NCBI GenBank assembly: GCA_977016875.1
Contig: CDRNST010000180.1
Coordinates: 1,736,001 to 1,800,000 of the forward strand
DNA length: 64,000 nt
Direction: 5' to 3'
Source of the DNA: Pavona decussata
Taxonomy: Eukaryota
The position numbers and the translations under genes were made by a program. This document shows positions 13,066 through 58,917 of the stretch, piece by piece; the first letter of the stretch is position 1; each line of letters starts with the position of its first letter. A model generated the notes under the pieces. The model made no database searches. It had not been told where the DNA came from and saw only the letters and a program-made list of their open reading frames with translations.

Positions 13066-13512
13066 CGCTTTAAGTACGCTCAAACAAAACGTACACACTC
13101 TTGAAGGCGACGAAGGCGATACCGCCCCTGAATGTTCAGCCGCCTTAGCAACATTTGGACACTGTGTCCCACTAACAAGCATCGAGCCCAGATGAGCGAT
13201 GTAACTCGAGGCAAGACGTAATGTCTCTATTTTTGACAGTTTTCTATCCGACGGTTCTGTTGGTATAAGAACACGCAGCGCGCCGAAAGCTGAGTTGACG
13301 AGGTGCGTTCTACTCCGTTCCCGTGCATTAGCAGCTTGCCGTTGCTTGCTGAGGCCTGTGAGCCGAGGTCTTCTTCGTTTCCTCTTACTGATCTTTGAGC
13401 TGTTTTCTCCGTCGGAGTTGTGCTGCTTGGGTGATGAATCATAATCGTCCGAGTCCGTTGCGTTCATGTCTCTTAGCTCGGTTCTTTGTTTCCTCTTGCG
13501 TGTTCCCTCCAT
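13066..13512 (-). CDS. paraxis: bHLH gene 1: Paraxis/Scleraxis (TCF15/SCX) orthologue, exon 1
   Basis: [52 protein letters not shown] plus the downstream CTFCLS motif diagnostic of Paraxis/Scleraxis. First ATG at 13512. GTAAGT donor at 13065 (phase 0). The unspliced ORF would run to 13003. Confidence 0.93.
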
Positions 13513-15759
13513 TTTGAAATAAAAGTAAAACAAAAAAATCAGTACAAACACAACGCAAGTAAGGGAGCTGCGTCAAAAATCTCACACGGCCATGGATGCC
13601 TATGGCAGTCAGTAATAGCCAGTGAGTTTCAGAGATGAAAATATAGAAGCAACTCTAGATCCAAAATTTGCATAAGTGATCATTCAGGAAAGAGTTGTAT
13701 TTTAATACTGGGCGGTCTTTTTGACGAACCGCAGGAACTCAGAACCGCCGATTAGCTGTCCAATAAGAACTGCAGTATCAGTTATGTTATGGTCTAGAAG
13801 CGAGAATTCTAACACAACATCCTTGCTTGTTGACGAGATAATTGCTGTTCAGACCTTAGAGGGCAACCTCGCTTGTGTTGTGGAATTTGCCATTAATTTT
13901 AGTCACAAAGCTCAATGGTTTGCGGGCCGTTTAGTGACTACAGATTGATTCCACTTCTTACTAGGTGTTGAAGAAAGATGACTGTTCAAGTCGACACGCG
14001 ATTCTGGTAGAAACTAGCGTGGATACACATGAGGGGATCATGTGATATTTCCATCTGCACAGAAATGTTCTGTAAACTAACTTCCTCGCTATCAACGAAT
14101 AATTGAAGCTAGGAGGAGTCCAAGAGCATTAGCAGGAATAAAAAAAAATACTGCTAACTGGAACGGAGCCATGGCATTCAGCTTTCATTCGATTAATCGG
14201 ATCTTGTTACCTCAAGTGAATTTAACAACATTTGAGTTAATAGCACACTTGAGAGCAGATTTTCAAGAGCACTCCACTTGACTTAAAACCCTTATCCCTA
14301 TTAAAATCCGATGTTTTCTGAACGGAGAAAAATGATCCTGGCAAAGTGTACTCGCATGTATCATCGTGCTTGAAGGAACATATACAGTCAAAACAAAACA
14401 GAGACGATTTTGTAATTTCATCACGCAATTTTCTAATGTCCTGAACAACTGAAACTTTTAAGTAGATGATATATCCTTCCATTTTTCCTAACTATTCAGG
14501 CGACCTTCGGTTTAAACACTTGAGATAATCCCTGGATTTATTTTATCAAGGTCTTGACACGGTATGCGCGGAAACACAAAAGAAAGACTGAAACAAGCTT
14601 TGAGGAACACTTAAATGTTCCAAACATCGATCAGGACTACTGCAAATGGTGCAAATCACCACGTCAAGTGAAATCTTTAGTAAGACATGACATAAACTTC
14701 ATGGCTTTTCAGTTTCTAAAATATTGTCCACTGATTGGAATGAATTTAATTACGAGAAATAGTTCAGGTACTCCCTTTTATAATCCTAAATTTTCATCTT
14801 CAGCGAGGAAGTCCGTGGTGCCAATTTTGCGTGCCTTGAGTACCGTAAAAGCTGTTGTCCTCTTTTGATACTATTTGAGCGTCAAACGACTTCACAGGAC
14901 TTTATGCTATCAGTTAAACTAATTCACATCACATATTTAAAAGGCTAAAGTCTTGTTAAACTGAGCATACCTTTCTAACGAGCACGTCATGCTCCATTTG
15001 ATCGTTGTCACAAAATCGACCCGCGAAGCGCGTCTAGGCTCAAACGACGTAGTTAGATGCCTTTCCTTCGAAACGGAAGACTGCTATAATAAAAAAGGAC
15101 AAAAACAATAACGCGGAGATTCAGTAAATCGGTGGAATTTTAGCCGCGTCTTGCTCGCACTTCAAACGTCTCCATCAACCGTATGTTCGGACTTTCAGTT
15201 GAGCATGCACTGCAACCGGATACACGGCAAATTAGTTGACGTCATAACGGAACAAGCCCTTTCTGTTAATAATTATTCATTTCCTGTATGAGATTCTCCC
15301 TCATTTCCTTGTCTACTATACCATTTACAGGATTTACAGTCCTTCCTGTGAAACCGCCAGGTCATTTATACCATTCGGTGGTGAGCGATAAGAGTATCCG
15401 CACTTTCTCTCTATTTAAGTTTGGCGGTCTTTCTCTCAATTGTAAGATTTGACTCTAGGAGTAACTTTTACTGTCAAGAAGGACATTATTTTTTCCATTT
15501 TCTTTAGTGATTTTCGTTCAATATTGCACTTCGTGTACAAGGCCCTTAAATTTGGAATGACAGCCCTCTTTCCTTACGTAATTTGCTTACTATCTCGAAT
15601 TATAGACAAAAACTTAGAGATTACTTCCAATCATTGTGAATTCGTGTCTTTTTGAACTCTCGTACAAACGGCTTAGATTATTTAATAATTTATTTGTTAT
15701 TCGTTTTAGTTATTATTATCATTATTACCACTATTACTATTGTTAATATTAATATTTAT

Positions 15760-16126
15760 CTATTTATTTATTTATTTATTTATTTATTTGTAAACTGTAA
15801 AGTAATTGCACCATCTTGATCAATATCCTGTATGACTTATGCCATATAAGCCCCTGGCTTCGGCATCTCGAGGCGTGCTTGCGCAATCTCCCGCCTCTCC
15901 AGAGGCTCATGCATGATAAAGTGCTTGACAATAACCGAGATCGAATTGGAATTTGGAAATGTTTTTTCAGGAGAGGGGAAAACCGGAGTACCCGGTGAAA
16001 AACCTTTTGGAGCAAGGACGAGAACCAACAACAAACTCAAACCACATATGACGCCCGAGTACGGGAATTGAACCCGGCGCACGTTGGTGGGAGGCAGGTG
16101 CTCCCCCTACTGCGCCATCCCTGCTC
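15760..16126 (-). mobile_element. tRNA-derived SINE (GAGCAGGGATGGCGCAGT head family)
   Basis: Same head and body as the copies at 56478 and 57265. A/B-box-like motifs and a (TAAA)n tail. Confidence 0.8.
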
Positions 16127-17732
16127 AGCCCCAATCACCTTAATCACTAAACCTCAGTTTTTTCAAACCAAAACAGTTCATAAACTTTGAAGCCACATAC
16201 TGTATTTACTGAAAAAATAAAACAACAACAACACTCCTATCAATTTAAAGGTCCGCCTCAACTGATCATATGTCGGAACTGCCAAAAACGACATTAATTT
16301 CCTGGAGCAGTACCGGGAATTTATTTACTTAGGTAATTCAGATTTATCAGCTGATTTATAAACGAAAAAACACGGCCTTCTTGTCAGTGCAGTAGCCCTT
16401 TCACGGGAGGAGGGTAATACCATCCCCCTCCCCCTAAAAAAGACTGCGTTGGAGGCTACTCATAGGTATTTGCTACTGTAAGGGAAAAATAAATTTTCAA
16501 AGCCACACATGTCAACCCAAGTGAATCGCCTAACTCGCCATCAGTCTCCCAGCAGCACAGTGGTTAGAGCATCTTTTCGGTGTACGAAGGTCCTGGATTC
16601 AATTCCCGAGGATGACTGCGGAGTTTTTCTTTCAGTATCCCATCCATGTGACATGTGACATGCTAAATACTACAGCTTTGAAAAGTATTGTGTTAACTAT
16701 TTGACTTGTTATGTTGGAGATTACCTAGCAATCTCGCGGTGCGTCGAAAAATCGCAGCAAGATTTTACCAACCTATAAGGTATGCTGTATGTGTTTACTC
16801 CAAACGTTCCATGAATCCGCGATGTACACAAGAGCTCCTGCTGTGTTAGTTTAGAAATCCACCACATTTGCCGCAAAAAGAAGCCAAAATAGCCTGAGGA
16901 AGGCTTGATACTCACTGCAGGGGCATAACAACTTGGCTGAAGCGAGTGTTGGACTAATGTGATGTGATCATGACCATACTTATAGAACAAAAACCGTTGG
17001 TGTTAAGGGAAGACTTTCTCCGAAGTGAAGCCAGCTTCTTGTTTGTTATCTTCTACAACTTGTGATACTAAGATCCTAATTGCAAAAATGCAATATCATT
17101 GCAAAGCCCTCGTAAACAAATGTTGCGTATCATTTAATTTCGTGAATTTGAAGTTGAACAATCAGAAACTGTCGAGGTTGTGCGAGTGAGTCAAGGCTGG
17201 CTACATCCCCAATCCTTCTAGACAAGAATGTGAGATAGTAGTCCTGAGAGCCTTCAGTTTAATGACGACGAAATCCCTGGTGCAAGTCAGAACTATTGAA
17301 GAAACTGAAAAATTCCGGTGAAAGACTCGAAACACAATCGAACACTAACCCAAACAACTGAGCAACTGATCCTACTCCAAAATGAAACTCATTTAACCTG
17401 CCGATACGTATTAACAAAAAGAGTGTTAGTCAAACCTAGTCTAAAAGTACTGAATGTTCAAATGAGCTCAGTCATGTACGAATACACGTGCTTGGTGAGT
17501 TATACAACTAGAAAAGTTCACGTGCAGTGAGATCCTTTTGACATGCAGAGATCGGATAACCCCAGCAGAGAAAATACAAACGGTCGTCGGGTCTTTTTAA
17601 ACAAAATTAATGGCTTTGTGTTGAGTCAAAAGACTTATACCAGCGTAACGGCGCGTGGCTACAATCCTAAATATGTTGATATATTGCGGCAGCACTCGAT
17701 AAACACACATTTAACGCAGAGTCGTCTCCGAT

Positions 17733-18054
17733 ATGGACGTCACACCTATTGGGAAGGTAATACCACAACCCAAGAAGAGACCTCGGCGACGAGGACCCCG
17801 CCTAACGGGTGTGAGCAAGCAGAGAAGAGTAGCTAACGCAAGGGAAAAGAGGCGAATGGAAACTTTGAATATGAACATTCAAATACTGCGACACATGATC
17901 CCTCTTCCACCGCAAGACAGGGAACCTTCTAAAACTGAAGTGATATGGCTGGCTGTGGATTACATTACGGAGCTAAACAAAATGTTGGAATCAGCTAACT
18001 TCCTTGAGAGCCTTGACAGTCTAAAAGGAAGTCCACTTCATTTTAATTTTGAGG
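17733..18054 (+). CDS. bHLH gene 2, Paraxis-related paralogue, exon 1
   Basis: RRGPRLTGVSKQRRVANAREKRRMETLNMNIQILRHMIPLPPQDREPSKTEVIWLAVDYITEL. Donor G|GTAAGT at 18055 (phase 1). Confidence 0.9.
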
Positions 18055-18886
18055 GTAAGTATTTTTGGGTGACGTAATTACTTCAAGAAATTGGGACATG
18101 TGTGCGATTTCGTAGATGCGCCCAGGCATCAATGAAATGGCTAGCAAAATTGTATTTAGGTACAGCTCTTACTGCAAGATTTATGAATTTACATTCCTCA
18201 GGATTTTTTTTTTTTTTTTTGAGATTTTGAAGCTACACTGAGGCCACCAGAATAATATTTTGCAGGCAGAATTAATGGGCGGTTGTGAAAAGCTGTCACC
18301 AATTCCTGAGCTACAAAGCTGTTCTGCGTCGACCGTACATAAAAGTTAAGTCGCCACTGAAGAAAAAGAAACCTGACTGGGAAATGAAGCTGAACATTAC
18401 GAATAAACAGTTTTTACTTATATCTCTGGCGGTGTCCAACCCACAGGCTAGGCTGCCGTGTAGTGTGCAAGTTTGAGTGAACTAAAGTTCTACGATACTT
18501 TGCCAAACAAAATCTTTCGATTCTTTAACTTGGCCTTCGTGGGAAGTAGAATCAGCTGAGCTATGAAATGTTTGCCAAGACAACGTAACCCCAGATAGTC
18601 GCAGCTGTGTCAAGCGAATTCCACTTTTTTGGACTCGTGCTTTTCTTTTTTTTTTCCCTTTCGAAAGGAAACAAAACACGTCTTGGACGCAAATCACAAC
18701 ATAAACAAGCTTGTCATTGGCATTCGACTAGCAATTAATAAAACCTCGAATCCATTTTTTTTGGTTGATAAAACTTAACCGGCACTGTCTAAAAGACAGC
18801 CACCTGTACTGTTGTTGATAACCAAATTTAGTTGCCCCTTGTTGCTTATGATTGATGATCTGACAACCTCATTCTTTTTCTTTCAG

Positions 18887-18960
18887 GTTGTGCACCTGAC
18901 CCTGACACTCTAAGAATGGTTCATAAATTTAGCACAACGCCTCGTTCTTATGGACTTTAG
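18887..18960 (+). CDS. bHLH gene 2 predicted exon 2 (GCAPDPDTLRMVHKFSTTPRSYGL*)
   Basis: Acceptor TTCTTTTTCTTTCAG| at 18886. A homologous acceptor is present in gene 4. Confidence 0.65.
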
Positions 18961-22462: not shown

Positions 22463-24128
22463 TTTTCTGCCTAGAAGGGCAACTCTGCCTTCGAAAACGG
22501 GTGACCCTACCAGGCGACTAGCACTGCCATGACGGTCATATTTGAGCTTGCCATGTAAATGGTTCACAGCGTTTTGTAAAGAAATGCATCAAATACTGTT
22601 GACTCTTCTACCAGGGACATCTTTACGCCATATAAATTTCAGGGGCCCCAAGTGACTCGACTCGAATCGACTGCCATCGCAGGCGAGTCATTTCTTGCTT
22701 CTTATTTTGGAATCATCTGTGTCTCAGTTCAAGGAATGTTTTTTTCAGAAAAGAATGCGGCAATTCGTGATCATCAAGCGGAAAAAGATCGATTGGACAT
22801 TTATTTTTGTTTTACTGCGGCTTCTTAAAAGTGAATTGTTTAAGTACGTCCAATTGTGATAATTGTTAACTGGGAGAGCTTGCAGTTATGAACCACAACA
22901 ATCAAAATGCTAAAAGCCGACTTAATAACAGGTCGTACGGCGCATTTAAGTATTGTTTGTATTTTAGTTCTAGTTAATCTTATCGATGCATCAAGTAATT
23001 GCGTGAACGTCTTAATCTTACGATTAAAGCACGTTTCCATTAAAAATCAATTTGTTCAAACTATTGCGAAGGTATCTTGAAACCCTTCTAGAAAACAATA
23101 GGACAAACAACTTGACAATGCCCCCGACCCTAAAAACAATAGCAGCTGGCTACACAATTTTAAAACAATTACAAGCTTATGAGAGCTGCTACACTACTGC
23201 ATCAGTGGAGGTATTTGCAATTTTAAAAAAGCTGATCATAGTCTCTTGGAGGTTCACATTTCAAATGCAACCAAGAAGGGCTCCTGAAAACGTCAAGATT
23301 AAAATCGTTTGTTTGACACAATGCGCTGTAAAACAAGAGCTCCTTGTTGCATAAACGGTTTATAACAAAGGCACGCTTGCAGTCGTAAATATTTATAACT
23401 AATTTTCTATTTTTGATTGAACGATTTTCAGTAGGGAGCTTTATTAGCCAAGTAGAGTTAAAAGGAAAGCATTTAAAATATCCCCATGTGGGCGTCGAGT
23501 TCTGTTCGATATAACAGCGCTATAAGACATTGGCATGCCGACAAATATAAATAAATACTTTTGATATTTTACAACAACGAAACCGTTAGTAAATGTTCAC
23601 CCAAAAATCAGCTACTTTCTTCTTGGATCGTTATTCAGTGAAATAGTTTTAGCTCATGATTGGTCATTTCCAAGCATAAGAAAAAATAAATATTTTGGAA
23701 CAGTTCAATTCTGAGGGGCCTTAAATAGTACATATTGAATACTATTGAATGTCTTGAACCCGTGAGAGACTTTGTCCAGTTGCTTGTATTTCCATCACTG
23801 ATTCTGGGTTGGCTTCTGATTGGATGAACCTTGTGCAGATTAGAGGCCAATGTTTGGTGTATCCAAGCTGATCTTGTTATTTACAAATGGCACACATTCC
23901 TTGATTACTGCCTGCAGTCAAAGGATGAAAAAGAAAGTATGTGAACTGAAAGCTGAATAGAGCAATTCGGGTTTATTTGCAATAAGACAAAAACTAATCA
24001 CGGAAAATACAAAAGTAATGAATTGTTAGCTCTCTAAGTAATGCAGACTTAAATTCGTAAATCACAATACATTTTGTTCACTTTATCACTTATGTAGCAT
24101 ACAAACAGGAAAAGCTGGTTTAACTCAC

Positions 24129-24427
24129 CTCAAAACTGGTTCTCTTTCTTTAGGTTCTTCTTCCTCTTTTAACAGCAGCATCAGTCGACCGATGTAGGAA
24201 GCCGCCAACCAGATTATCTCAGTTTTTGAAGGTTCTTTGTGTTGAGGTGGAAGAGGTATCAACTTGCGTAAAATCCTGATGTTTGAATTCAAAGTGTGCA
24301 CCCGATTTCTCTCTCTGGCGTTCGCCAACCTTCTTTGTTTGCTTAGGCCTGTCAGCCGGGGACCTCGACGCTTCGGTTTCTTTTTGCGACTTTGTGAGGT
24401 TTCTCTATCCTTCGGTATGTTCTCCAT
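24129..24427 (-). CDS. bHLH gene 3, Paraxis-related paralogue, exon 1
   Basis: [60 protein letters not shown]. Donor AG|GTGAGT at 24128 (phase 2). Candidate acceptor TTTCATCCTTTGACTGCAG| at 23912 adds only Q* (23905-23911). Confidence 0.9.
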
Positions 24428-39534: not shown

Positions 39535-39882
39535 ATGTCCTCATCGAGTGAAGAGCAATTGACAGAAGATTTATCGCACGGCAATGACGAGACACAAAAG
39601 AAGAAACGGCGTCGCAAGGTTTTGAAAAGACGCGGACCTCGATTGACCGGCGTGAGCAAGCAACGCAAAAAAGCAAACGCACGCGAGAGAAACCGGGTGA
39701 ACATCTTGAACAACTACATTCAACTTCTACGGACTCTCATTCCTGAATCAGAAGAGAGGGCTACCAAGTTCGATGTGATTATTGGAGCCGCGACGTACAT
39801 CTCCCAGCTAACGTCGATTTTACAAGAAGAAGAGAAAACGGAATCGATGGATGGTAGAGATTTGTTCAAACTGGACTGCTGA
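39535..39882 (+). CDS. bHLH gene 6, Paraxis-related paralogue (apparently single coding exon)
   Basis: RRGPRLTGVSKQRKKANARERNRVNILNNYIQLLRTLIPESEERATKFDVIIGAATYISQL. ATG-to-TGA ORF. AATAAA at 40209. Confidence 0.9.
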   Translation: MSSSSEEQLTEDLSHGNDETQKKKRRRKVLKRRGPRLTGVSKQRKKANARERNRVNILNNYIQLLRTLIPESEERATKFDVIIGAATYISQLTSILQEEEKTESMDGRDLFKLDC

Positions 39883-42731: not shown

Positions 42732-43157
42732 ATGGTTAATTCAACGCTATGCGCCGTACGAGTCCTGCCCACCCGTGTTCCTCCTATGTGCAAGTTACAA
42801 ACAACAACGATCCCCACACCGCTGGTACAAGGAAAGAAAAAACACAGAAGACGAGGTCCGCGGCTAACTGGTGTAAGCAAGCAAAGAAAGTCTGCAAATG
42901 CGCGCGAAAGAAACCGCGTGCGTGTTATAAACAACGCCCTGGAGACGCTGCTAGATCTAATACCGTTGTTGCCAACGGAGAAACGGCCTTCCAAGATAGA
43001 GACCGTTCGTTTGGCAGCGCTGTATATCCATCATTTGACGGAACTGTTAACAAAAGTTAGAAGAAACGGACCGGCTATCGATCAAGGGCAGGGAAAATGC
43101 GAGACATATAGCGTTGAGATGAAACAGGAACAAATTGTAGAGCAAGACTTTGTTTGA
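42732..43157 (+). CDS. bHLH gene 7, Paraxis-related paralogue (apparently single coding exon)
   Basis: RRGPRLTGVSKQRKSANARERNRVRVINNALETLLDLIPLLPTEKRPSKIETVRLAALYIHHL. First ATG at 42732 (alternative 42786). Confidence 0.9.
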   Translation: MVNSTLCAVRVLPTRVPPMCKLQTTTIPTPLVQGKKKHRRRGPRLTGVSKQRKSANARERNRVRVINNALETLLDLIPLLPTEKRPSKIETVRLAALYIHHLTELLTKVRRNGPAIDQGQGKCETYSVEMKQEQIVEQDFV

Positions 43158-46100
43158 TAAAAAAAATTGACAATTGAGAACGTCCTCAAGTAAGGATACG
43201 TTTTCGGGGAGAAAAACTTTAATTGTGTTTGTAAACCCCGGGCTAGACAAAAGCGACAGTCGACGAGAGCTCAATTTTAAGAGCTCGCTAGACTGAAAGA
43301 GTGTACATGAGAATTTGAACTCAGCGAAACGGTTTCCCTCTGACGAAGGGTTAACGCTCTAAACGTCAGCTCTTGAATGTCTTTACGATGGCCTAAGCTA
43401 GTTTCTTCGTTAGAAAACCTCCCATGTCCTTCCTAATAAAAATTCGATTGAAACACTTTGCTGTGAAAAGAATTCGAGGTATCTTTCATATTGGAAGAGT
43501 GATTAAAAATAATATTTTTATTGTTATATGGTGGTATTTATCCAGGACTGCAAGCAGGCTATTATTAAAAAAAATTCGGAGCATGAGAATTGCCCCTCTT
43601 CGAGCTCGCCGCGATTATTCTACCTTGCATGAGATCAATGTTCTGGCAATCTATACTTGTCTCAAACTGAATATTGAAACGGTTAACAGTTTTCAAACTG
43701 AACGGAGACATGCATTGATTTGGTGTTGGCACTGTTTGTTTAGCCCCTTTTTGCGGCGCCAAACTGAGTCTGGTTTTTTATTCATTTTGGTTTGAAATAG
43801 GCCTAGGGTATAGATTTTAACAATTTTGATCTGAAAGTCTAATAACGGGTATAGATTTTACAGAAACGGCGTAGTATGGATTCTGCCAATGGAGGTCTGA
43901 AAAGGGGTGCCGGAAAATTACCTGTTTTGGTCTGAAATAGGATCAAAGTTGGAAAACCAAGCTACACACCCCACCTCAAATTCTGAGGAGTACCTCCCGA
44001 TATACAACCCCACTTTATAAGGGGGGTGTGAGTGCCGGACTCTCTGTTCCAGGGAAACAAAGTACGTGACGTCAGAGCGTCTGGTAATTGAGTTACACGA
44101 CTGATGTGCGCGTCCTTCGTGTACCGGCAAACTGAGACTGTCAGTTATTGTTATTCCAGGGCCCTAAGCAGTGATAAGGTTTCGTTTTGATGGTAATTCA
44201 TCACATTCCTGGCTTGAATTTGTTTTATGTTTGCTAAGGTTAATTTCTCAGGTCCTCCTGTGGGTTTGTCGTGGAAATTAAGTGATAAATAGAACCTGTA
44301 TATGTTTATGCTGCGAACTGTTTGTGTTGATGCTAAACTACGGTGATCATAAAGCTTAGAGGAGGCTCCTCTATGAGGGATGAAGTTAGTTAAGGAACCG
44401 ACAGCAAGATGGCGGTAGGTAAACAAAAACTTGAACCACCAGGAATATGAAGAGTGTCAAGCTAAGTGCGAGGTAAAGAAGATTTGGCTGTTGGCGATTT
44501 TAAAATAGTGCAAGAGAGAGCAATTTAAGCTTTTCTGTGACGTTATGGGGAGTATGTGGGAAAAAACTGATTTCCAATATTACTGAATCACGTCGGCATT
44601 TGGATCTTTGTGTTTTATCATGGTTTGACCTCACGTTTCGTGAAAAAGCCTTTAAATCACTTTTAAACCTTTTTTGCACACGTTAGTGTAAGTTACTGAC
44701 ATTCTTTTCAACCGCAATTATCTTTGTGCGAACCGGCGGAGCAGGGGCTGTTTAATCCGATGATAAGGAGAGGGCGATAGACTCGAGCTACCTTAACCTC
44801 CAAATTCATAAATAGCAAGTTTAAAAGAATGAAGAAAAGACTTGAGCAATCGAAAACTCATTCAGATTGTTGTCGCACTTGCCGTTTTCTTTTAGAGCTT
44901 CGGTAAGAGTGTTTCTATGTGGGACAAAACGTCCTTTTTATACGACTTTTTCAATAACGAGTTTTCATCTGTACACTGTAGGGCGCAAGCAAATTTGCGT
45001 ATCTCCTTCTTGTTTCTCTGACTGGGTAGAAGTGATGTATGTTTTAAAAGATCCGCTGATCTGTTTTGTTTGTTAAGCGGCCAACAAAGACGTTTTTGTT
45101 TTGATAAAAACAGTTTTTGCAGAAAAACGGCTCAACTAGCGAAGGGGACAGTGTAAACAAAAACGAGACATTAGAAAATACTTTTAAGCCCTGTTTTTCT
45201 TTATCTTGAGCAAATGTGTGCAATACATTATCTCCACTTCTGCACGTGTTTTTTTTTTTTCCACTGTACAGGTTTCTCCATGTTTGGTAAAAGAAGAAAT
45301 TCCTATCTTGTTAATATCGCTGGAAATGATAAGACCTCTAAAAGACTAGGAAAAGGTAAATAGTTGTTTATATACCCCGCGAAAGTTTAAAAAAAGACAC
45401 GTACTTAATGACTACCGAACGCAACCATACCGCCTTGGCGGCCATTTTGGAATTGATTGAAAATTTGCTTCAATTTTTCATTGGTGCGATTTTCGATTCC
45501 AATCCTTTCATTGTTTCAGGGATATCCAGCCGATCGGCTGTTGTACCCATTATGTAAATCACGATGACTGTGGTCGTTATCTCACGCCTTTTCAGCCTTA
45601 ATGTTTAATTAACCGAACATAACCAAATACCGATAAAGGAAAAGACACCCACACAACCCAGGCAACTACTTGAGAAACTCACTTTCCAAAACGAAACAAG
45701 CTCGCGAAAAAAGGCTATAGTTCGACATTCGATTTATAAGAGAGCTAATTGACAATGTTGGGGGTTGTTTCTTGCTGTTGCAAAATACTTTTGTCATCTG
45801 AAGCACGGGATACATTTCTAAGTTCGATCATTAGAGAGCTGAAAACACTTGTCATCGCTCACAAAGTATTTATTCTCAATGATGCCGCCTTAGTCACAAC
45901 TGTTATATTCGGCCTTAGTGAAAATCCATCCCGCATTTAGAAATATCATTGAACTATTGAAACTCGTATGCTATATCCTGCTCGAAAGTTTTAAGGGAAA
46001 CAGTTTTTCCCAAGAAGAAAAAAAAGAACTTGCGAAAAACCGTAAAAAAAAAAAAGAAGTAAAAAAGTGGGGCACGTATGCCTTCTTATCGCTACAATTT

Positions 46101-46688
46101 GTTTTTGCTTTCCATCCAATTCTCTTCCCAAATAATAATTCGTTATCAGGAAGGACAACTTGTTTTATTTGATTTGAACTGACGTTTTATTTTACAAAGA
46201 GAAAACAAGCTAACATGAAATCAATAACATGCTTCATAATACCTCACAGCTTGAGAACTATTAAAGTTATATGGCCTGAAGGTCGGTGTAATAATGTATT
46301 TACTATCATCACTAATTATGAAATTTTAAAACTCGTGATACGCCTTTAAATTAATGCCAAGTGGTTACTCTCTTTTCCAAGGCCCAGCCTTGTTTAAGCG
46401 TTTTATAACTCTATAACTACAATAATGTTCCACGGAAGTGATGAGTTCATTGTGTGTCTTCTATGATCACCAGCCACTTCAATAAGCTCTTCAAATAGTA
46501 ATTGATACGTTCGTCTACAGACAGTCAATTTTCAGTTCAAAGAAGCCTCCGAGTCTACGAAGGAAAATGCAAGCACTATTTTAAAACACGCCAAACCAGA
46601 ACTAATGCAGAGGAAAGCAACATCTGTTAAACTATTTATTTAGTGTTATTTTTCGCAGTGTAACTTTCTTTAAAAATCTTAGAAGACG

Positions 46689-46702
46689 TTAAAGGCCTTT
46701 AC
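46689..46702 (-). CDS. bHLH gene 8 predicted exon 2 (GKGL*)
   Basis: Acceptor TATTATTTCTTTCAG| at 46703. AATAAA on the minus strand at 46635-46640. Confidence 0.5.
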
Positions 46703-46879
46703 CTGAAAGAAATAATAGTTCGCTAAGATCTAGTTCTGACAACGAAGAGCAACCACCGTCGAGGCCAAAAAGATCGGCAACTGAAAGTAAAACACAAAAA
46801 TACCGTCAGCAGATCAATGATACAGCAACAGCGTTGAGAAAGATGTGTTTATCAGTCGGTGACACAGCCTATATACTAG

Positions 46880-47010
46880 GAAAAAAGGAAATCCGAGTTC
46901 TCCTCAGTAACAGGAGTCGAACCTATGACCTTCCAATTACTCAAATTCGGATGCTCTACCACTGAGCCGTGATAGGAGATTCATGGGAGCTAGGACATTA
47001 AACTAGGTTG
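46880..47010 (-). mobile_element. tRNA-derived SINE fragment in the predicted gene 8 intron
   Basis: GGAGTCGAACCTATGACC...GCTCTACCACTGAGC is the reverse complement of tRNA B/A boxes. Relatives at ~49230-49330, ~49780-49920 and 16545-16640 (+). Confidence 0.65.
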
Positions 47011-47050
47011 AAGAACAAGAACTACTGTAAGTACAATAATCATGTCTGAC

Positions 47051-47405
47051 CTGTTACATCTATTAGGGTAAGGTCCAAGCTCTGTGAGACATGTACCACA
47101 TCAACAGCATTTTCTGATGTGGTCGTGTCCACTGGTTTCTCTGTCTTCTGCAGCAATTCTGTGAGAAATTCAATATAAGTCGCTGCCATCCATATGACTT
47201 CAGTCTTAGTTGGCCGCTTCTCGTATGGAGACAGTGGAATAAGCTCGCGTAGATTTTCAATATGTGTATTCAAGGCCTGTACTCTTCGTCTTTCACGTTC
47301 GTTGGCCATTTTACGTTGCTTGCTCACACCCGTCAGCCGAGGTGGCCGGCGTTTGTTCTTCTTCCGCGATGTTCTTTTCTCGATCTCTTGGGGCTCTTTT
47401 CCCAT
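47051..47405 (-). CDS. bHLH gene 8, Paraxis-related paralogue, exon 1
   Basis: RRPPRLTGVSKQRKMANERERRRVQALNTHIENLRELIPLSPYEKRPTKTEVIWMAATYIEFL. ATG at 47405 (in-frame upstream ATG at 47492). Donor G|GTCAGA at 47050 (phase 1). Unspliced stop at 47040. Confidence 0.9.
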
Positions 47406-50400
47406 TCTACCTATGTTGGCCGTTTTACCTGACGTTTCCCGACTTAATTTACCTTGATATGCACTGCCGCGTGGCGTATGAGAAATAAACATATACAAAC
47501 AATGTTGAACCTAAAATAGGAGACGCAACACAAACAATCTCCTCCCATTTGCTTCGGCGAGTCTTCAAGATCCAGTTACTCCTCGCGGGAACGCCAAAAT
47601 GCGGTTCCAATAAAGTGAAATATAAACGCTGGAAGTCGATATTTCTTTTGACACGTGAAAAGTAAACGTTTCCTGGGTCAACAAAGTAGTTTACCCTTTT
47701 GTCAACGTACAAATCCTTGCAACTCACTCGAATACCGACCCGGAGGCACACCGCACTAAACATTACCGGAAAGGATTATAAAAACAAGGTTCATCATGCA
47801 TCTCAGGTCAGACGCCTCATCACGTCAAGTGAAAGGTCATTGTAGTAGTAAACACTGGATATTACTGGGAAAAAAATGAATAAAATCATTTCGAACCCAC
47901 GACCAAATCACTGAGTGGTTAAGTTATATATTGTTCTGATGAGAGGTTTAACAAATGGAATGCTTATTCTATCGTGATCAGATCGAGTGGCAGCTATAAC
48001 CGGAAATTGTTTTCCGACGGTACAACTTATAACGTCATCACCAGTTGTTAATTACTGAACATTTGAGCGGGCAAGAACAAGAAAAACTATCTTTTTAGCT
48101 TTTAACGCAACTTGCTGGCTCAACAATTGAAGTTAAATTTCTATAAAAAGGTTGGTTTTGCACAAAACCAAAGGGTGCAGATTGGACTGCCAAACCGTGG
48201 ATTGTTGAATCTCTTTCCAAGAATGCGTCAGAGCCAGGGAGGGATACCTCAGCTATTTTTGGCTATGTTCTTATAAATCAGTATTTCTAGACCTGTTAAA
48301 TTATTAGGTGGACACTATGAGCAAATCTAAAACAGCTGATCTCTGTTATGATTGGCGGTGAAGACGTTAATTGGAAAGCAATCGAGCGCATAGTGGAAGA
48401 AACAATTAACTTCAGGAAATTGTTAAAATGGGGTCTTCAAACATACCTTCGGCTAAATATATCTCCCGAGTTAGAAATGCTTCGGTTTTAGTGGTTTGAT
48501 TGGGAAACCAACCCTAGTATAAAATATTAGCTTGCTAGTTGGAGGGAACTCTTATTTACAGCGATGTACTGAGATCTGAATTCCTTCCAATTCATACTCT
48601 GTACAAATGTAAAGTCTGAAAGTTATTAATTTCGAAAAGGCCTTAAAATGTTTGAGCAGAGCATTTGCTATGACTTTGAACCTCATTTCACTGCACTGAA
48701 ATTTAAGAAACATAACCGAGGTTTAAAGTTTTCAACCGAAACCGATATCACCGGAAATGAGCGAAACTTATTTCTCCATCAGTTCAGTTGAGAGAAAGAA
48801 TTCAATGTTTTATCAAGAACAGCAGATGTTTACCGCAAATTTGTGGGACTTTTTTTTCAGATCTAGTCATTTTACCTCTTCCGCCAAGATGGATTCGCTT
48901 GTGTTAAGTGGAAAAAATATATATTCAAAAAGGGCCGAAATGTCTCTAACTTAGATTGCTAGAACCGTAGTTTACTTTTTCTGTCAAAAATGGTCTACAA
49001 AAGGGTAAGGGTTTGGACCTTAGGGCGGAATCTCCTCGTATAATATAAAACTTTGTTGTGTACTCCCTCCCTACGGGGGGCTTGGCTGACGAAAACTAAC
49101 CTCTTGCGAAATTGAAATGCATGAAGGTATTTGAGAGTCGCTAGTTTGAGTAAATTCATTTTGGGAAGAATGTGATGGCCTGGTTAGTGAAATGAGAACG
49201 ATGTATTTTATTAGTAATTTTCACAGGCAGACTCGGAAAAAGAAAGTCCAAGTCGGACAGGAGTCGAACCCATGACGTGCCTTAATCATTAATAGTCCGG
49301 ATGCTCCATTGAGCTATGTAGACTCACGAAAACAATGTCAACTTGTGTCTTTTACGACCTCTACAGCGGGAAAGACTGTCATCACGCTACCAGCTAATGA
49401 TTTGCGTATTTCACTGCCGTCAATCATAATTACGGCGACTATTGACTGACCACCAAGTACAGAAACCGACAAAGTGGATCGAAATCCTCCAATCGCAGCG
49501 CAGGAACATGACCCTTTGACCCCGTTGAAGCAAACGCCCTTTTTTCTAAGAGGTCCGCTGTAGTGATTGACGGCAGTGAAAAGCGTAACGGTTGGTTGAA
49601 TTTTGAACTTCAGTGTCCGCATGTTACTGGAAGGCGCAGTAATTTAGAGAGCAAATATTCACGTTGAAGAGATGATGGATCCCAGAGTAACAAAAGCAAT
49701 ATGGCGGTCCTTCCAGACTTAGTGCTCACTTTCCATCCCATATTACATTACGCTTCACCAGGAAATTGAAACTCTTTGTGTGTGTATAGGAGACTTTGTG
49801 GGAGCAAGGCCAGGTGTGAAAAACAGTCTGCATACAAATTCAATTACTAGTTTGGAAGCTCTACCACTGAGTGCGCTACAGGAGACTTGGCCATTTAAAC
49901 TAGGTTCACGTGACAAAGATACCATCTGGTCTCACTCCCACGCGTAGAGGTATCCGGACTAAGGATCGAAAGATCCCAGGTTCGGATTTTTTGCGAGTAA
50001 ATGCCTGTGTCGCTGGCTGATAACATAGGAAAGTTATGACTGACAAAGTACATCCTTATTAGAGGTTTTGGGGATTGTACTGAAATGAAAATAATAAGAA
50101 CAAAAATATCGGAGTTGCTTTTTCTTCTACTGCACTAGAAGTAAGAGCACAGTTACAACTGAGGTTAGCTTTCACCAGTCACCTCTCCAGTCAAACCATC
50201 GAATCATAGTTTTCCTTTAATTTGTCATCGCCCATGCAGTTTATATAGTCACACTAAAGGAGACTTATAAAGAAGCCGACATCATGCTCTGAAATGGTTC
50301 TGTGAAAAAAATGCGACAATTATACTATTATAATATCGTGGAGATTTAAACTCTTGACCATCCACTAACAGTATGCCGTCACCTGAGACCCTGTAAATAA

Positions 50401-50736: not shown

Positions 50737-50816
50737 TTAATGTGTTAAATATAATAGCCGAGTAAAGAATAGACCTTGAGTAAAATATAATGGTCATTAA
50801 TTTCAAAGCAAACTTC

Positions 50817-53659: not shown

Positions 53660-56245
53660 AGGGACCTGTCATTATTTATCGCCTGGGGGGGATCGAATGA
53701 TTTTGGGCTAAACACGATGAAATTTAGCCGATCCCCCCCTTAAATGTTATTTTATTGAAGCGATCCCCCCTCATAACTATATATAACTTTCGTGACCCCT
53801 CCCCCCACCCCATGTCTTTGTACCCATAATCACCTTTCGACGTGTATATTTAGTGTTTTAAACGTTCATATACAGGTAGTATTTCTAACTATGATGTACT
53901 TACAGCATAATAAAGCCATTATCGCGTAGTATTTTTTTAAACGTGTCTCTTGATCCGTGTCTCTTTCTAGTCTGGATCCAGACATCTGAATTCAGTTGAC
54001 ATACAAGCAATCTTGCTTAAAACTGCAAAGTGCTTGAAACTGCAATCAGTGCTTGAAACTGCAAAGTTACTCTTTTTAGAGTGCCAAATAGCAGTCCGCC
54101 AAGTCCCTATCAGCAGGTTATATTTAGCGACTATTCGGCCATCTGGAAGGGCTAGGATCCGCCACTGTTCCTGTCTCCTTTTTTTTTTCTATAGTGTAAT
54201 AGATCAGCCTTTTGTAGCTTTGCTCACATTTTCATAATTTTTTTTGTTCGTTTTTTTTTATTTTTTTTTTATTTTTGTTTTCCTTTTTTTTTTTCATCCA
54301 GTGTTTACTTGTACAGTAACTTCAGCTATTTGGTCATCTGGTACAAAAGTTAAAACTGGCATACGAACAGTTGACTGTAAATCGAAATCAGCAATGGCAA
54401 GATCATCTTCGCTATCCTCGTCATCATCTAACTCCGTATCTGATTCTTCACTCTCTTCCTCACTGCTGGACAACTCATTCCCGTTGCCTGGACTTCCCTG
54501 TCGATAGTAATGGTAGCGAATTACCTTTATCTTGTCCAGCTTTATACCAACAGTGGTCAGGCCATGTTCCTCAAGGTACAGGTCGAGCTGTCTCACCTTC
54601 AGCTTTTCAACTTTGCCATTCTCAATAAGTATGCCCCACTGGTAGTCCTTGTATGTTGGTTCCTCTTCTAACCTTTTTTTTTTCCTTAGCCTCTCTTGTT
54701 CTAATATCCTTCCTGATGTTGATATCATTTAGATGGCCTACGTTTTCAATGACATGCTTTTCCTCGACACTATAGGTTGCACAGAAAGCAGCGATGGTAT
54801 TTGGATTGTCCGCAGAGATGGCGTTTTGTTCGTACAAGTCCTTCGGACATTTCCTCGGTTGATAATCGTCTGGAGCATGACCTGTTGTCGGCGTTTCGTA
54901 CACATCCATAAAGTGTCCGGGATTTTGCTTGTCTGGCACAGGCTGAGGGATTCTTTCTGTTACTGGTCCCACCCATCAGTTGTTGGTACACCAGAAACAG
55001 AGTGTGGAGCTTGCATCGCTTTGCTTATTGCAGGCATCCCGATAAAATTAAAAAAAGAGCTCCCCTCGGACGTAGTGGTCCTCAATAAAACTCTCTATTT
55101 TACTAAGATATGCCGCACCGGGTATTTCGGCCTTATTGTTTTCTGAAGCATTTCGGTACGTACGTATTTAACTCAGAAGCATTAAAAAAGAATAACTCTT
55201 CGGGAGACTCACTCACTCTACTACTGATGTAATCCTTCAGAACAAGGGCGTCGTCTATCCTTTCGGCAACCTGCTTGCAAACGTGCCAAGCATTTTTTCC
55301 ATACGCTCTTTTTCGTACTGTTCGTAGGAATGGACAAGCGACTCAAGCAGAGGGCACGTCATCTCTTAGGAAACTTGACCTCAATCGAGGTCGCGGGGCA
55401 AATTTTCGGTTCAATCGAAGAGAATGATAGAGTTACTCCTGTAGATAGCATCAATGCTGACTTTGCTAAGAAACTAACAAGGCATTTGCATCTAGACCCT
55501 TTGCTATGGCTAGTACAAAAGGGTAGTTTTAGCACGACCCTAGCAAAAAATCTAGAGCAAGTAGCAGCCATTTTAAGGGCACAAAGTCCAGGGTCACCCT
55601 GCCGAAGGGGACTAAATGTTGTTGTTGAATCGGATGACAAGGCTCAAGAGGCAAATGAAGTTGTTGAATGGGATGATGAGGCTCAAGATGAGGCAGATGA
55701 AGCAGTTGGATCGAATTTAGTATAGAGCTGACACAAGATGCCCAATTCCTGGAGAGGCGATAAATGGTTTATTTTTAAACAAACACGCTTTTTACAATAA
55801 TTCAGTTATCAGAAGTTTATATAGTTCACAATTTAGAATCCACCTGTCATGTTTAAAGATGAATATTAGCTAAGTCATAAAAGTTATAAAAGGAAAAATG
55901 TAGAAGCGTTAAAACAAAGCTTTCTCAATATAAATTGAAATGCTCACATTAGCCAGTGTGACAGACTTCCGTTTTTTAAATAAAGTTGTGTTAGAACAAA
56001 TTGAGATTACAAATGCTACCATCTCCCAACAGAATGGGCACATTTATGTTGTATGCTTTCAAACTGGCATTGTTCAAGCAGATTTGAGTGGTCCCCCCTC
56101 TGAATCCTTCCAAAATTTTCAGTGATCCCCCCTTTTGGGCTCTCAGTTACAACTGATCCCCCCCTCTGTTCTCCTAAAAATCAAGTGATCCCCCCCCCCC
56201 CAAAATCCTCCAACCCCCCCAGGCGATAAATAATGACCGGTCCCT
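53660..56245 (-). mobile_element. 2.6-kb internally deleted DNA transposon with 31-bp TIRs and a broken ORF ending in a SAP-like motif
   Basis: AGGGAC(CT/CG)GTCATTATTTATCGCCTGGGGGG at both ends (30/31 match). Subterminal GATCCCCC repeats. Minus-strand protein relic at ~54294-55350 with stops and frameshifts. Confidence 0.8.
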
Positions 56246-56477
56246 TTATTGCTATTCTCAGCTATTCTCACTATACAGGTAAGTCGTTTAGGTTACAGTT
56301 CAATAAATAAAGAAAGTTTATACATGGCATCTGTTACAGTTATCAGTAATTGCTCTTCATGACTTAACGCAGTCAAACCAACAAATAATTTTTTATTTGG
56401 AAAAAATAATTTTTTACTGGTTTGCAAAGTTCCACATTTACAGTATTTATCTTGTATTAACATAATTGAAGAGATAC

Positions 56478-56740
56478 GGGAGCAGGGATGGCGCAGTGGT
56501 GAGAGCACTCGCCTCCCACCAATGTGGCCCGGGTTCGATTCCCGGACTCGGCGTCGTATGTGGGTTGAGTTTGTTGTTGGTTCTCGTCCCCGCTCCGAGG
56601 GTTTTTCTCCGGGTACTCCGGTTTTCCTCCCTCCACAAAAACCAACATTTCCAAATTCCAATTCGACCTGGAAACAGTGGAGAGAAGAGCCACCCCGTGG
56701 ATTCCACTGAAATTCCTATTTATTTATTTTATTTTTATTT
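56478..56740 (+). mobile_element. tRNA-derived SINE
   Basis: GGATGGCGCAGTGG (A box), GGTTCGATTCC (B box), (ATTT)n tail. Confidence 0.85.
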
Positions 56741-57265
56741 GATATGTGGAATTAGGCCCTAGGTGCATGATTCTTGATCTAATGACAAATTCTCTCTGTC
56801 TCACGAGAAAACACAAGGTAATTTGTAGGGAGAATGTAGTGGTTTATCAGAGGTCATTTGAGGTCTTTTCCCATTGATCCAAGGAACTATTCCACCACAG
56901 TGAATGGTTATTCAATGACGCTTTGTGTAAGTCCGCAAGGGTAAAAGCCATTCTCGTTATTATTCAGAACTAAATTAGCCACTGCGCAATAGCAAATTGC
57001 TATATACACGTAAAGCATTTTTTACCGTATATTGACTGCTATTCATGTGTATAGCAATTGACTGTGAATATAGAAATTTACGCTTCACTTGTGCGTGTCA
57101 GCAGTTTCATAGCTACTGACTGTGTAGCTATGAAACTGAACACTAGCACAAGTGAAGTGTTAATTAAGTATTTAAGTTGTTTGAAACATTTGCATTTAGT
57201 GCATAACTCTTTCCCGCTATGCCCACGTCCAGACACATATACTCTACGGTTTTCTGTACATCCAG

Positions 57266-57529
57266 GGGAGCAGGGATGGCGCAGTGGTGAGAGCACTCGC
57301 CTCCCATCAATGTGACCCGGTTCGATTCCCGAAGTTGACGCCATATCTGGGTTGAGATTGTTGTTGGTTCTCGTCCTTGCTTCGAGGGTTTTTCTCCGGG
57401 TTCTCCGCTTTTCCTCCCTCCACAAAAACCAACATTTCCAAACTCCAATTCGACCCGGAAACAGTGGACAAATAGCCACTCTGTGGATGTGTCACTGAAA
57501 TTCCCATTTATTTCATTTATTTATTTATT
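57266..57529 (+). mobile_element. tRNA-derived SINE with 9-bp TSD
   Basis: Same family as the 56478 copy. TSD TACATCCAG at 57257-57265 and 57530-57538. Confidence 0.9.
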
Positions 57530-58163: not shown

Positions 58164-58530
58164 ATGGACAACGACGTTGCAGAAGAAACTCTGACACAAC
58201 CACAATTAAAGAAGAAAACCAAGAGACGAGGAAGGCGATTGACTGGCCTCAGCAAGCAACGAAGGACAGCGAATATGCGGGAACGAAATCGGGTTCATGT
58301 TCTGAACGATTGTATAGATCGATTGCGAGAGCTCATTCCATTGTTTCCGAATGAACGAAAACCTTCGAAGACGGACACTATTCGGTTAGCAGCTCTCTAC
58401 ATTTCCCATCTGACAGATTTGCTGGCTGTGGAGAACACTGACCACCCAGAAATAATGCGTGGAGAAAGTTTGGACGAGGAGATGTCAGTAACTTCATTGG
58501 AGTTTGATCCATTCGATGTGGAGACCGCAG
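58164..58530 (+). CDS. bHLH gene 9, Paraxis-related paralogue, exon 1
   Basis: [63 protein letters not shown]. Candidate donor G|GTATTG at 58531 (phase 1). The unspliced ORF ends at 58571. Confidence 0.92.
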
Positions 58531-58843
58531 GTATTGACATTTCTGTGCAATCAGTTTTTGACGTTAGTTAAGTTGGAAATCAGGAAACGTTGCTGTTTTG
58601 GCAAAGTTTTGACTTGTTTTTCTAACAAATAAGAAGCAAAATCATTCATAAAGTCGGGAACTACAAGTTTAGATTAGTCGCTGAAAATGGGAAAAAAATT
58701 TGTCTAAATGTATGTCTGAAACACTACACCGTTTAAAAGAGACGTCCCACTTTCTCAACGCCTACAGCAATTTAAGCGAAGTAGATAAACATTTTTTGAT
58801 GGGAAGATAATTGCAAATTATTATTCTCCTTGTTTTCCAACAG

Positions 58844-58917
58844 AGCTGGCAGTTTTCTTTTGGAAAGAGGACGACTTAAGTGGCGATACCAGTAATGACC
58901 TCTCAACGGTGTTTTAG
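58844..58917 (+). CDS. bHLH gene 9 predicted exon 2 (ELAVFFWKEDDLSGDTSNDLSTVF*)
   Basis: Strong acceptor TTATTCTCCTTGTTTTCCAACAG| at 58843. Open in phase 1. AATAAA at 59088. Confidence 0.6.

Follow-up and report, generated by a model that had tools for sequence, protein, structure and literature searches.

The stretch analysed here, a window of 64,000 nucleotides from the coral Pavona decussata, is very probably best explained, taken as a whole, as the core of the scleractinian Paraxis-PaTH-Twist bHLH cluster. The first-pass annotation had claimed nine intact bHLH ORFs, with ATGs at 13512-, 17733+, 24427-, 27225-, 34808-, 39535+, 42732+, 47405- and 58164+. Each of these ATGs begins, or sits inside, an entry of the ORF list, and all nine products match the full Pfam HLH model (PF00010, E 1.5e-11 to 1.3e-18) with basic regions and reading frames intact. 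HLH matches number 70 across the 602 Mb genome, so that about 0.007 would be expected by chance in a 64 kb window; the clustering of nine bHLH genes is far above chance. The accompanying observation that no other recognisable host gene lies between them fits Pfam and Rfam scans of the window: 10 further ORFs of 108-181 aa, between or beside the bHLH genes, gave no Pfam match, a scan that short-exon genes could escape, and the sole Rfam match was a tRNA-like SINE.

The array continues past both ends of the window. In full it comprises 12 bHLH genes in 119 kb of one contig: g0, Paraxis, g2-g10 and Twist. The related bHLH gene g0 lies 1.1 kb ahead of the window start, and g10, an additional PaTH gene, 4 kb past its end. 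Twist, recognised by its WR motif and by a clade with Nematostella Twist (99/95), lies 53 kb beyond the window end and 104 kb from Paraxis, at the far end of the array. Both the PaTH family and its genomic association with Paraxis and Twist have been described before, under the name Cni-PaTH, and this kind of cluster is known; the size of the coral array and its collinearity across anthozoans are new here.

Gene 1 is Paraxis

The identification of gene 1 as Paraxis stands. Its closest relatives are the TCF15/Scleraxis family, which accounts for all of the top 120 matches in a similarity search, with 66% identity to Nematostella TCF15 and 50-64% to vertebrate and amphioxus TCF15/Scleraxis. It groups with amphioxus, shark, frog and eel TCF15/SCX in an 8-row clade (92/88; 93 in another tree), the base of the g1/TCF15 group being without resolution in the 86-row tree. 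Exon 1 (13066..13512, minus strand, 149 codons) carries a 10-residue motif and ends in CTFCLS, followed by a phase 0 donor, GCG/GTAAGT, at 13065. The Paraxis intron thus falls just after CTFCLS and leads to a short second exon (9265..9315, minus strand), in which 16 codons and a stop follow the acceptor ...CCTAAAG and match the C-terminus of the spliced orthologue P0003 (E 1e-5). The Nematostella Paraxis gene spans about 4 kb, similar to g1.

Genes 2-9 form one family

The proposal that genes 2-9 share an N-terminal signature with gene 1 was borne out by an invariant RR..RLTG.SKQR..AN.RE..R block in nine of nine genes. RLTG-x-SKQR marks the Paraxis superfamily and is also carried by bilaterian TCF15; in g2-g10 it precedes the basic region, as it does in TCF15 of amphioxus, coelacanth and frog. 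Unlike bilaterian TCF15/SCX, to which g1 is orthologous, g2-g10 have no CTFCLS, show LN.xI..L rather than VNxAF.AL in helix 1, and form a separate clade. In maximum-likelihood trees resting on 74 alignment columns, genes 2-9 fall in one clade (99/92 and 98/94) beside Paraxis, distinct from the Twist, Hand, PTF1a, SCL and atonal-like genes that this genome also contains. In the 86-row tree this PaTH clade holds 44 rows, among them Nem64 and Nematostella LOC116619576; the placement of the medusozoan single-copy gene lacks support. A Twist or Hand identity for g2-g10 was considered and rejected, as Twist (100/99) and Hand each have a clade of their own and g2-g10 lack the WR motif. Two helix-2 classes can be told apart, an IW type (g2-g5 and g8) and an IRLAA type (g7, g9 and g10). 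The nearest solved structures are class II bHLH proteins including NeuroD1, Twist1 and TAL1, with MyoD and Myf5 as distant PDB matches (E 1e-8 to 1e-9); the entries for NeuroD1, Twist1, TAL1 and the like were solved as E-protein heterodimers.

The bHLH ORFs are not whole genes, a correction to the first reading: in at least g1, g8 and g9 they are first exons, and consensus splice donors close the ORFs of g2, g4 and g5. The g4-type gene g2 (17733..18077, plus strand) is a lineage-specific inverted copy with donor GAGG/GTAAGT at 18055. On the minus strand follow g3 (24125..24427), positional counterpart of Nematostella nem64; g4 (26848..27225), with donor GAAG/GTAAGT at 26870; and g5 (34416..34808), with donor GATG/GTAAGT at 34456, which shares a group with LOC116619576 in the trees. 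The plus-strand genes g6 (39535..39882), with a shortened loop, and g7 (42732..43157) end their ORFs without a donor, and the g6 coding sequence is probably a single exon; g6 groups in one clade with Stylophora g6 and a gene of the more distant anthozoan Z (97/90), while g7 is the earliest-branching type within the PaTH family. Exon 1 of g9 (58164..58530, plus strand) ends at a phase 1 donor, CAG/GTATTG, and exon 2 (58844..58917, plus strand) supplies an FFWKED tail and stop that match the spliced orthologues P0159 and P0149 (E 7e-7). Identity to the Stylophora orthologue is 78% for g9 and 87% for g4.

Transcription in this species was shown for g8 only, by same-organism RNA contigs (X1 record 2, X1 record 6 and X7 record 24) that join three exons at GT..AG junctions with 0-5 mismatches. 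Exon 1 (47051..47405, minus strand) closes at a phase 1 donor, G/GTCAGA; the joint 47051/46780 skips 270 nt, GT..AG on the minus strand, and leads to exon 2 (46703..46780, minus strand), whose acidic/hydrophobic tail is homologous to the Orbicella and Montipora tails. The joint 46703/46554 skips 148 nt, was recovered from two runs of a single sample, and opens exon 3 (coding part 46532..46554, minus strand) of a transcript that reaches at least 46174. The X1 and X7 RNA contigs gave no coverage of g7. Short Logan contigs from relatives hold spliced g1-, g8- and g9-type products.

Age and conservation of the array

The description of the array as old and expanded is well founded. Its paralogues fall into orthology groups that take in several other corals. 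Every member but g2 has a Stylophora orthologue, at dN/dS of 0.03-0.16 (0.03 for g4) with dS saturated, and gene order and orientation are conserved across three anthozoan lineages: Stylophora has g5-g10 in identical order and orientation, and anthozoan Z keeps both for Paraxis, g3, g4, g5, g6, g7, g9 and g10. Judged from these sequence comparisons, the array is at least hexacorallian in age with its order and orientation fixed; the trees put several PaTH duplications before the coral-anemone split. The Stylophora g3 counterpart appears frameshifted, which suggests that not every member is indispensable.

The further claim that the array is still duplicating holds for one lineage-specific inverted duplicate, the g2/g4 pair; it is weakened in that the duplication had already occurred when the lineage parted from a 97%-identical relative, and the two copies owe their continued similarity to gene conversion. 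Two inverted arms of 402 nt (17595..17996 on the left, a gene-conversion tract, and its partner 26962..27363 on the right) are 98% complementary; outside them the 3' flanks are merely 80-86% identical and the upstream sequence is unrelated. The genes themselves are sisters in the trees (100/96). From this pattern g2 is evidently an inverted copy of g4, homogenised by gene conversion, and the sole recent change in this lineage.

Comparison with Nematostella

The sea-anemone study named in the first-pass annotation exists and says what was ascribed to it: nem7, nem24 and nem64 form a group of PaTH paralogues that lies together with paraxis and twist on chromosome 2 of Nematostella vectensis (Cole et al. 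2023, PMC10060217). Nem64 was identified through a published CRISPR 14-mer, which matches the gene beside Nematostella Paraxis, and its CRISPR site encodes the same PRLTG motif that the coral genes carry. The coral genes form one clade with Nem64 and, like their Nematostella counterparts, are linked to Paraxis and Twist, all of them within 119 kb of one contig. In all three animals the side and strand of Paraxis on which a g3/Nem64-type gene is found are the same; this gene is the immediate neighbour of Paraxis in Nematostella and Z, whereas in the coral the derived g2 copy comes between them. With g2 set aside, g3 is the PaTH gene closest upstream of Paraxis, and it is encoded on the same strand. 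The ML tree gives no supported placement of g3 with respect to Nem64; an AU test did not reject a g3+Nem64 clade (p=0.33). A g5-type gene follows further along in Nematostella as well. The two arrays differ in number, with at least 10 PaTH genes in 50 kb of the coral against three named in Nematostella (two found within 37 kb there), and in surroundings: Twist lies 8 kb downstream of Paraxis in Nematostella instead of at the far array end, and the g0-type gene that adjoins the coral array is 1.8 Mb away.

The literature describes the expansion as sea-anemone- or anthozoan-specific. These results revise the published view of a radiation confined to sea anemones, and a tentative reading, to which we give somewhat less than even weight, is that the array is an ancient collinear cluster. 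The hexacorallian ancestor would then have had Paraxis followed by at least 6-7 PaTH genes (g3, g4, g5, g6, g7 and g9/g10 types) in fixed order and orientation; corals and anthozoan Z would have kept this layout, Nematostella would be a reduced remnant, and nem64 would be the g3 orthologue. If so, the survival of this layout despite saturated silent-site divergence would imply cis-regulation shared across the array, as in Hox and NK clusters, and every member would be tied to its own cell identity. The Drosophila achaete-scute complex, Hox and NK are likewise tandem arrays of paralogous selector-type genes with long-kept order and orientation; they belong to other families, and the likeness is drawn from gene layout alone.

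Proposed function and alternatives

Genes g2-g10 are proposed to have arisen by tandem, DNA-level duplication of a Paraxis-like ancestor. Each PaTH gene encodes a small bHLH protein of class II (group A) in three parts: an intact basic region predicted to bind E-boxes, the RLTG-x-SKQR extension, and a C-terminal tail that is short and acidic/hydrophobic. In most members this tail is encoded around or downstream of a phase 1 intron. Every paralogue would heterodimerise with a ubiquitous E-protein, bind CANNTG sites and be activated in its own cell population, muscle subtypes being the likeliest, which would make the array a set of alternative identity factors driving overlapping effector sets. 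We infer E-protein dimerisation, E-box binding and cell-type-specific roles for the coral proteins, and the selector role is suggested by analogy with Nematostella, in which nem64 knockout removes the tentacle retractor muscle and e-protein knockout all muscle types (PMC10060217). A search of the coral genome for an E-protein bHLH encoded as a single exon found none. Cnidarians lack MRF orthologues; as Cole et al. noted by analogy, MyoD, Myf5, Myogenin and MRF4 are also paralogous class II bHLH factors that specify muscle identity with E-proteins, although the two are not homologous as families (PMC10060217). Aurelia cPATH is associated with striated muscle, and a later Nematostella chromatin study doubts simple co-option by Nem64.

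Public names of the orthologues would divide genes 2-9 among several classical families: NCBI and UniRef entries from Stylophora, Montipora, Orbicella and Exaiptasia call them neurogenin-3-like, atonal-like, Atoh1-like, FIGLA-like, PTF1A-like or scleraxis. This reading is almost certainly wrong and already contradicted by the sequence evidence, since both ML trees give a single clade with Nem64 that excludes the coral's own PTF1a-like, atonal-like, Hand, Twist and SCL genes as well as PTF1a representatives, and all members carry RLTG-x-SKQR, which the classical families are without. The array might instead be a by-product of tandem duplication, many members being redundant or decaying copies that nothing but their recent origin and gene conversion keeps together, and not a functional set. 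Gene conversion between g2 and g4 (pair dN/dS 0.7) and the frameshifted Stylophora g3-like copy would fit, as would g7, which evolves at nearly the flank rate (7.3% overall divergence against 6-7% in the flanks; dN/dS 0.36 against a 93%-identical relative). This reading is nonetheless highly improbable given nine intact ORFs and basic regions, Stylophora orthologues under constraint at saturated dS for all but g2, gene order kept in three lineages, and the spliced, expressed g8.

That the extra coral paralogues work mainly outside muscle, in coral-specific or other cell types (neurons, gland cells, cnidocytes or the skeleton-forming calicoblasts, for example), so that the Nematostella muscle-selector reading would not transfer, is unlikely, although several observations favour it: corals keep at least 10 paralogues to the three named in Nematostella, Nem64-positive cells share features with neurons (PMC10060217), and the g8 transcript comes from ordinary bulk runs that carry no tissue information. 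All functional data on the family (nem64, nem7/24, Aurelia cPATH), however, concern muscle, and the neighbouring Paraxis and Twist are mesoderm and muscle regulators. Twist-family factors swap partners, and with twelve linked, related bHLH genes and two helix-2 classes the members could pair mainly with one another or with Paraxis and Twist, tuning partner choice like vertebrate Twist and Hand rather than acting as independent E-protein-dependent activators. This is less probable again, as the loss of all muscle types in the Nematostella e-protein knockout fits an E-protein as common partner (PMC10060217). No other lineage-specific expansion of transcription factors in a non-bilaterian has so far been linked as well to new muscle cell types as that of the PaTH family. 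Annotations that name PaTH genes neurogenin-, atonal-, FIGLA- or PTF1A-like, sometimes fusing neighbours, will mislead name-based comparisons; about 10 short genes are now defined for look-up in coral single-cell atlases.

Composition and extent of the array

The array structure is real, and its first interpretation is largely right. The nine intact bHLH ORFs claimed in the first-pass annotation (g1 to g9 from left to right, with start codons at 13512(−), 17733(+), 24427(−), 27225(−), 34808(−), 39535(+), 42732(+), 47405(−) and 58164(+)) were all recovered at exactly these positions in an ORF listing of the window, and each encodes a full-length Pfam HLH domain (E 1.5e-11 to 1.3e-18). Alignment of the nine genes revealed 25 invariant columns, among them those of a block, RR..RLTG.SKQR..AN.RE..R, that starts just N-terminal of the basic region and extends into it. 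The whole 602 Mb assembly contains 70 PF00010 matches; chance alone would put ~0.007 of them in a 64 kb stretch, against the nine observed. No Pfam match was obtained for ten other ORFs of 108-181 aa lying between or beside the genes in the window, and an Rfam search of the window returned a tRNA-like element at 46910-46968 as its sole match.

The array continues beyond the window on both sides, a point that had been put forward for checking. A profile built from the nine genes identified three further bHLH genes on the same contig (C180): g10, a tenth close paralogue, at C180:1804062-1804319 (+), 4 kb past the window end; g0, which is more distantly related and carries the motif MLTGVSRQRR, at C180:1734683-1734919 (−; locus L012), 1.1 kb ahead of the window start; and Twist, recognised by its C-terminal WR motif, at C180:1852997-1853260 (−), 53 kb past the window end. 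In total, twelve bHLH genes lie within 118.6 kb.

Other tandem bHLH clusters are present in the genome on contigs C104 (4.67-4.83 Mb, achaete-scute-like), C143 (2.55-2.63 Mb), C25 (1.64-1.77 Mb) and C31 (3.34-3.41 Mb), the Paraxis-PaTH-Twist array being the largest. The long spacer between g8 and g9 holds overlapping ORFs of 116-144 aa with no Pfam match (window 54294-55725 and 56293-57479) and a 90% direct repeat (56529-56681 and 57316-57468) encoding a MEFGNVGFCGGRK-type peptide, together probably degraded mobile-element sequence.

Relationships of the array genes

The identification of g1 as Paraxis is borne out by 66% identity to Nematostella “transcription factor 15”, 50-64% identity to vertebrate and amphioxus TCF15/Scleraxis, and grouping with TCF15/Scleraxis in trees (support 93 in one, 92/88 in another of 52 rows). 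A g2–g10 profile matched 215 proteins at E<=1e-5, with named matches in stony corals (Stylophora, Pocillopora, Orbicella, Montipora, Desmophyllum, Oculina, Porites) and sea anemones (Exaiptasia, Nematostella). In an exhaustive profile search, 37 clusters at 50% identity were obtained at E<=1e-30, while Paraxis first appeared at ~1e-24. The public names of the array orthologues at NCBI are inconsistent, ranging over neurogenin-3-like, atonal-like, Atoh1-like, FIGLA-like, PTF1A-like and scleraxis. The g6 and g7 orthologues are fused in public models of Porites evermanni (protein P0121) and Stylophora (L036:3349-6568, a region of LSMT01000014.1), giving proteins of 220 and 274 aa.

Two maximum-likelihood trees, of 86 and 52 rows, were built from 74 columns covering the RLTG-x-SKQR motif and the bHLH domain. 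Genes 2–9 had been proposed to form one clade near Paraxis, and in both trees they do so, together with Nem64, rather than scattering among known families. In the 86-row tree, g2–g10, Nem64, the Nematostella gene LOC116619576 and one Exaiptasia gene form a single 44-row clade (99/92), the PaTH clade; a g0-type clade (100/99) is its sister (joint node 96/82), and both sit with Paraxis (85/91), apart from the genome's own Twist, Hand, PTF1a-like, SCL and atonal-like genes. The same clades recur in the 52-row tree (PaTH core, the g2–g10 clade, 98/94; g0-type 98/99; Paraxis 92/88), which also recovers orthology groups for g4 (98/95), g5 including LOC116619576 (87/73), g6 (97/90), g8 (99/91), g9 (99/98) and g10 (98/83). 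Nem64 groups with g3 and g2/g4 in the 86-row tree (92/82) and has no resolved place in the 52-row tree; the AU test did not reject g3, Nem64 and the g3-type gene of Z, an anthozoan ENA contig carrying a comparable array, as one clade (p=0.33). Nor did it reject grouping the single-copy gene of hydrozoans with the PaTH core (p=0.31); by this test the medusozoan “cpath” gene, present as a single copy, may belong either to the g0 type or to the core.

An N-terminal signature had been held to link gene 1 to the other eight; it is present in all nine, but it is not specific to the array. RLTG-x-SKQR occurs in the TCF15 proteins of amphioxus (KLTGVSKQRQ), coelacanth (RLTGISKQRQ) and frog (RLSGVSKQRQ), and in two more families with bilaterian members: the g0 type, found in Nematostella (“lin-32”), Hydractinia, amphioxus, a hemichordate, a priapulid and a sawfish, and a type represented on contig C95. 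The motif therefore marks a Paraxis superfamily, and this supports a Paraxis-like ancestor for the PaTH genes rather than one of the Twist or Hand type. The taxon spread of the g0 type resembles that of the “Peridot” family (Gyoja et al. 2012), a candidate identity only. The C95-type gene (L011, G000:C95:177628-177915) carries an 11-residue motif, has an amphioxus relative named TCF21-like, and lies 46 kb from a PTF1a-like gene (L013, G000:C95:131071-131313).

Gene order, age and duplication

With all orders flipped to the strand of the window, the coral array reads Paraxis(−) g2(+) g3(−) g4(−) g5(−) g6(+) g7(+) g8(−) g9(+) g10(+). The Stylophora locus (35 kb) reads g4(+), a g3-like gene with frameshifts(+), g5(−) g6(+) g7(+) g8(−) g9(+) g10(+), and Z (31 kb) reads Paraxis(−) g3-type(−) g4-type(−) g5(−) g6(+) g7(+) g9-type(+) g10-type(+); Exaiptasia has two tandem g9/g10-type genes (+)(+). 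The gene-type assignments in Z were checked, including by the 52-row tree, and its Paraxis belongs to none of the scleractinian, Nematostella-like and octocoral groups. The order common to the window, Stylophora and Z indicates that the Paraxis-to-g10 layout is ancestral to at least the lineages compared. Among these lineages, g8 was seen in stony corals only, and g2 is a derived copy.

Divergence from Stylophora is saturated at synonymous sites (dS 1.4 to over 3) with dN of 0.07-0.29; dN/dS is 0.03-0.16 for g4–g9, while g10 gave no dS estimate. Saturated dS at low dN/dS, together with the order kept in Stylophora and Z, upholds the description of the array as old and expanded. Against a ~93%-identical relative, g7 has a dN/dS of 0.36, with changes mostly outside the bHLH. 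The Stylophora counterpart of g3, in the nem64 position (L036:14328-14632; LSMT01000014.1 ~798.1-798.4 kb), reads in two frames and has a disrupted basic region and no annotated gene; this reflects either pseudogenisation or a mistake in the assembly.

The further suggestion that the array is still duplicating stands only in part. One lineage-specific inverted pair is present, g2 and g4 being inverted copies that flank g3. Their arms (17595-17996 and 26962-27363) share a 402-nt tract, 98% complementary, that spans the 5' UTR and the bHLH-coding part; outside it, the remaining CDS and at least 500 nt downstream are just 80-86% identical (window 17560-18600 versus 26350-27400), and the sequence further upstream is unrelated. 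This identity profile has the pattern expected of gene conversion. A relative whose Paraxis is 95% identical as protein (97% as DNA) already carries the g2-specific deletion in the same head-to-head position, so that the g2/g4 duplication predates the split from that relative; by the ML trees, it is younger than the split from Stylophora.

Relation to the Nematostella cluster and proposed mechanism

In Nematostella, nem7, nem24 and nem64 form a paralogue group without bilaterian orthology, named Cni-PaTH, which clusters with paraxis and twist on chromosome 2 (Cole et al. 2023, PMC10060217). These genes are expressed in distinct retractor muscles; nem64 knockout causes loss of the tentacle retractor, while e-protein knockout generally disrupts muscle formation, with fast-muscle markers gone (PMC10060217). 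The paper says what the first-pass annotation attributed to it (PMC10060217), and this kind of cluster is already published for Nematostella. Across 24 kb surrounding Nematostella Paraxis, the Nem64 CRISPR target (Cole et al. supplement) has a single match, which encodes the PRLTG motif and falls within a 124-aa bHLH gene 6 kb upstream of Paraxis. The locus order over 37 kb is Twist(−), Paraxis(−), Nem64(−), a 301-aa gene and LOC116619576(+); of the coral layout, Nematostella keeps Paraxis, one gene of the g5 type and, where g3 stands in the coral, Nem64. New here are the coral array's size and deep collinearity, along with the Paraxis-type signature, the corrected gene models and the positional nem64 counterpart; a literature search of limited reach found no paper on the coral array.

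Apart from one conservative change, to K in g2, the class II basic-region residues (AN.RER.R) are kept in all members. Among solved structures, the nearest by sequence are NeuroD1 (2QL2), Twist1 (8OSB) and TAL1 (2YPA), all three solved as heterodimers with E-proteins. The likeliest mechanism is one in which array members would pair with an E-protein, the heterodimers would act on E-boxes, and every paralogue would serve a cell population of its own, because the basic regions are kept and in view of the nearest structures and the Nematostella knockouts (PMC10060217). A Pfam HLH scan of this genome (70 matches) did not reveal the E-protein bHLH as a single exon: ten candidate stretches belonged to bHLH-PAS, Id-like, Myc-like or other genes, or gave no signal with the filter used. 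Nor was there a match to a back-translated E-protein motif; an intron may divide the domain.

Gene structures and expression

In at least three cases (g1, g8 and g9), the ORF is a first exon. Exon 1 of g1 ends in a GTAAGT donor at 13065, directly after a CTFCLS motif, and exon 2 contributes 16 codons (9265-9315); g9 has a phase 1 donor past 58530 and a second exon encoding an FFWKED tail (58844-58917). For g8, a 616-nt RNA contig from the same organism, with 0-5 mismatches, joins 47207-47051, 46780-46703 and 46554-46174, skipping GT..AG introns of 270 and 148 nt on the minus strand. The second joint recurs in another run from that sample, which also covers the 5' end to 47482, and the tail translated exon by exon matches the Orbicella, Pocillopora and Oculina orthologues. 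At the corresponding position, g2, g4 and g5 each terminate in a consensus phase 1 donor (G|GTAAGT). No convincing second exon emerged for them when orthologue tails were aligned locally to the 3 kb downstream; these exons are probably tiny, and going by the Stylophora g5 model the missing one may have only about 7 codons. No donor was found for g6 and g7. The phase 1 intron common to members near the 3' end of the CDS points to an origin of the array by DNA-level tandem duplication rather than retroposition.

The spliced RNA contigs demonstrate transcription of g8 in Pavona decussata. Spliced g1-, g8- and g9-type products of relatives are present in short Logan contigs, and the exact spliced product of Stylophora g9 was found in 14 contigs, each <2 kb; such RNA contigs cannot show absence of expression. 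Contigs from two “coral metagenome” metatranscriptomic libraries (X2 and X4) are collinear with window 42600-47600. They were rejected as expression evidence, as they evenly cover 5 kb including intergenic DNA at ~93% identity, which indicates genomic DNA of a related coral inside RNA libraries. The tRNA-like element at 46910-46968 (−; Rfam tRNA, 31 bits) lies inside g8 intron 1, shows very high contig depth in 4 of 4 runs and probably represents a SINE of tRNA origin; comparable spikes in depth were seen at ~43270-43430 and ~43770-43940.
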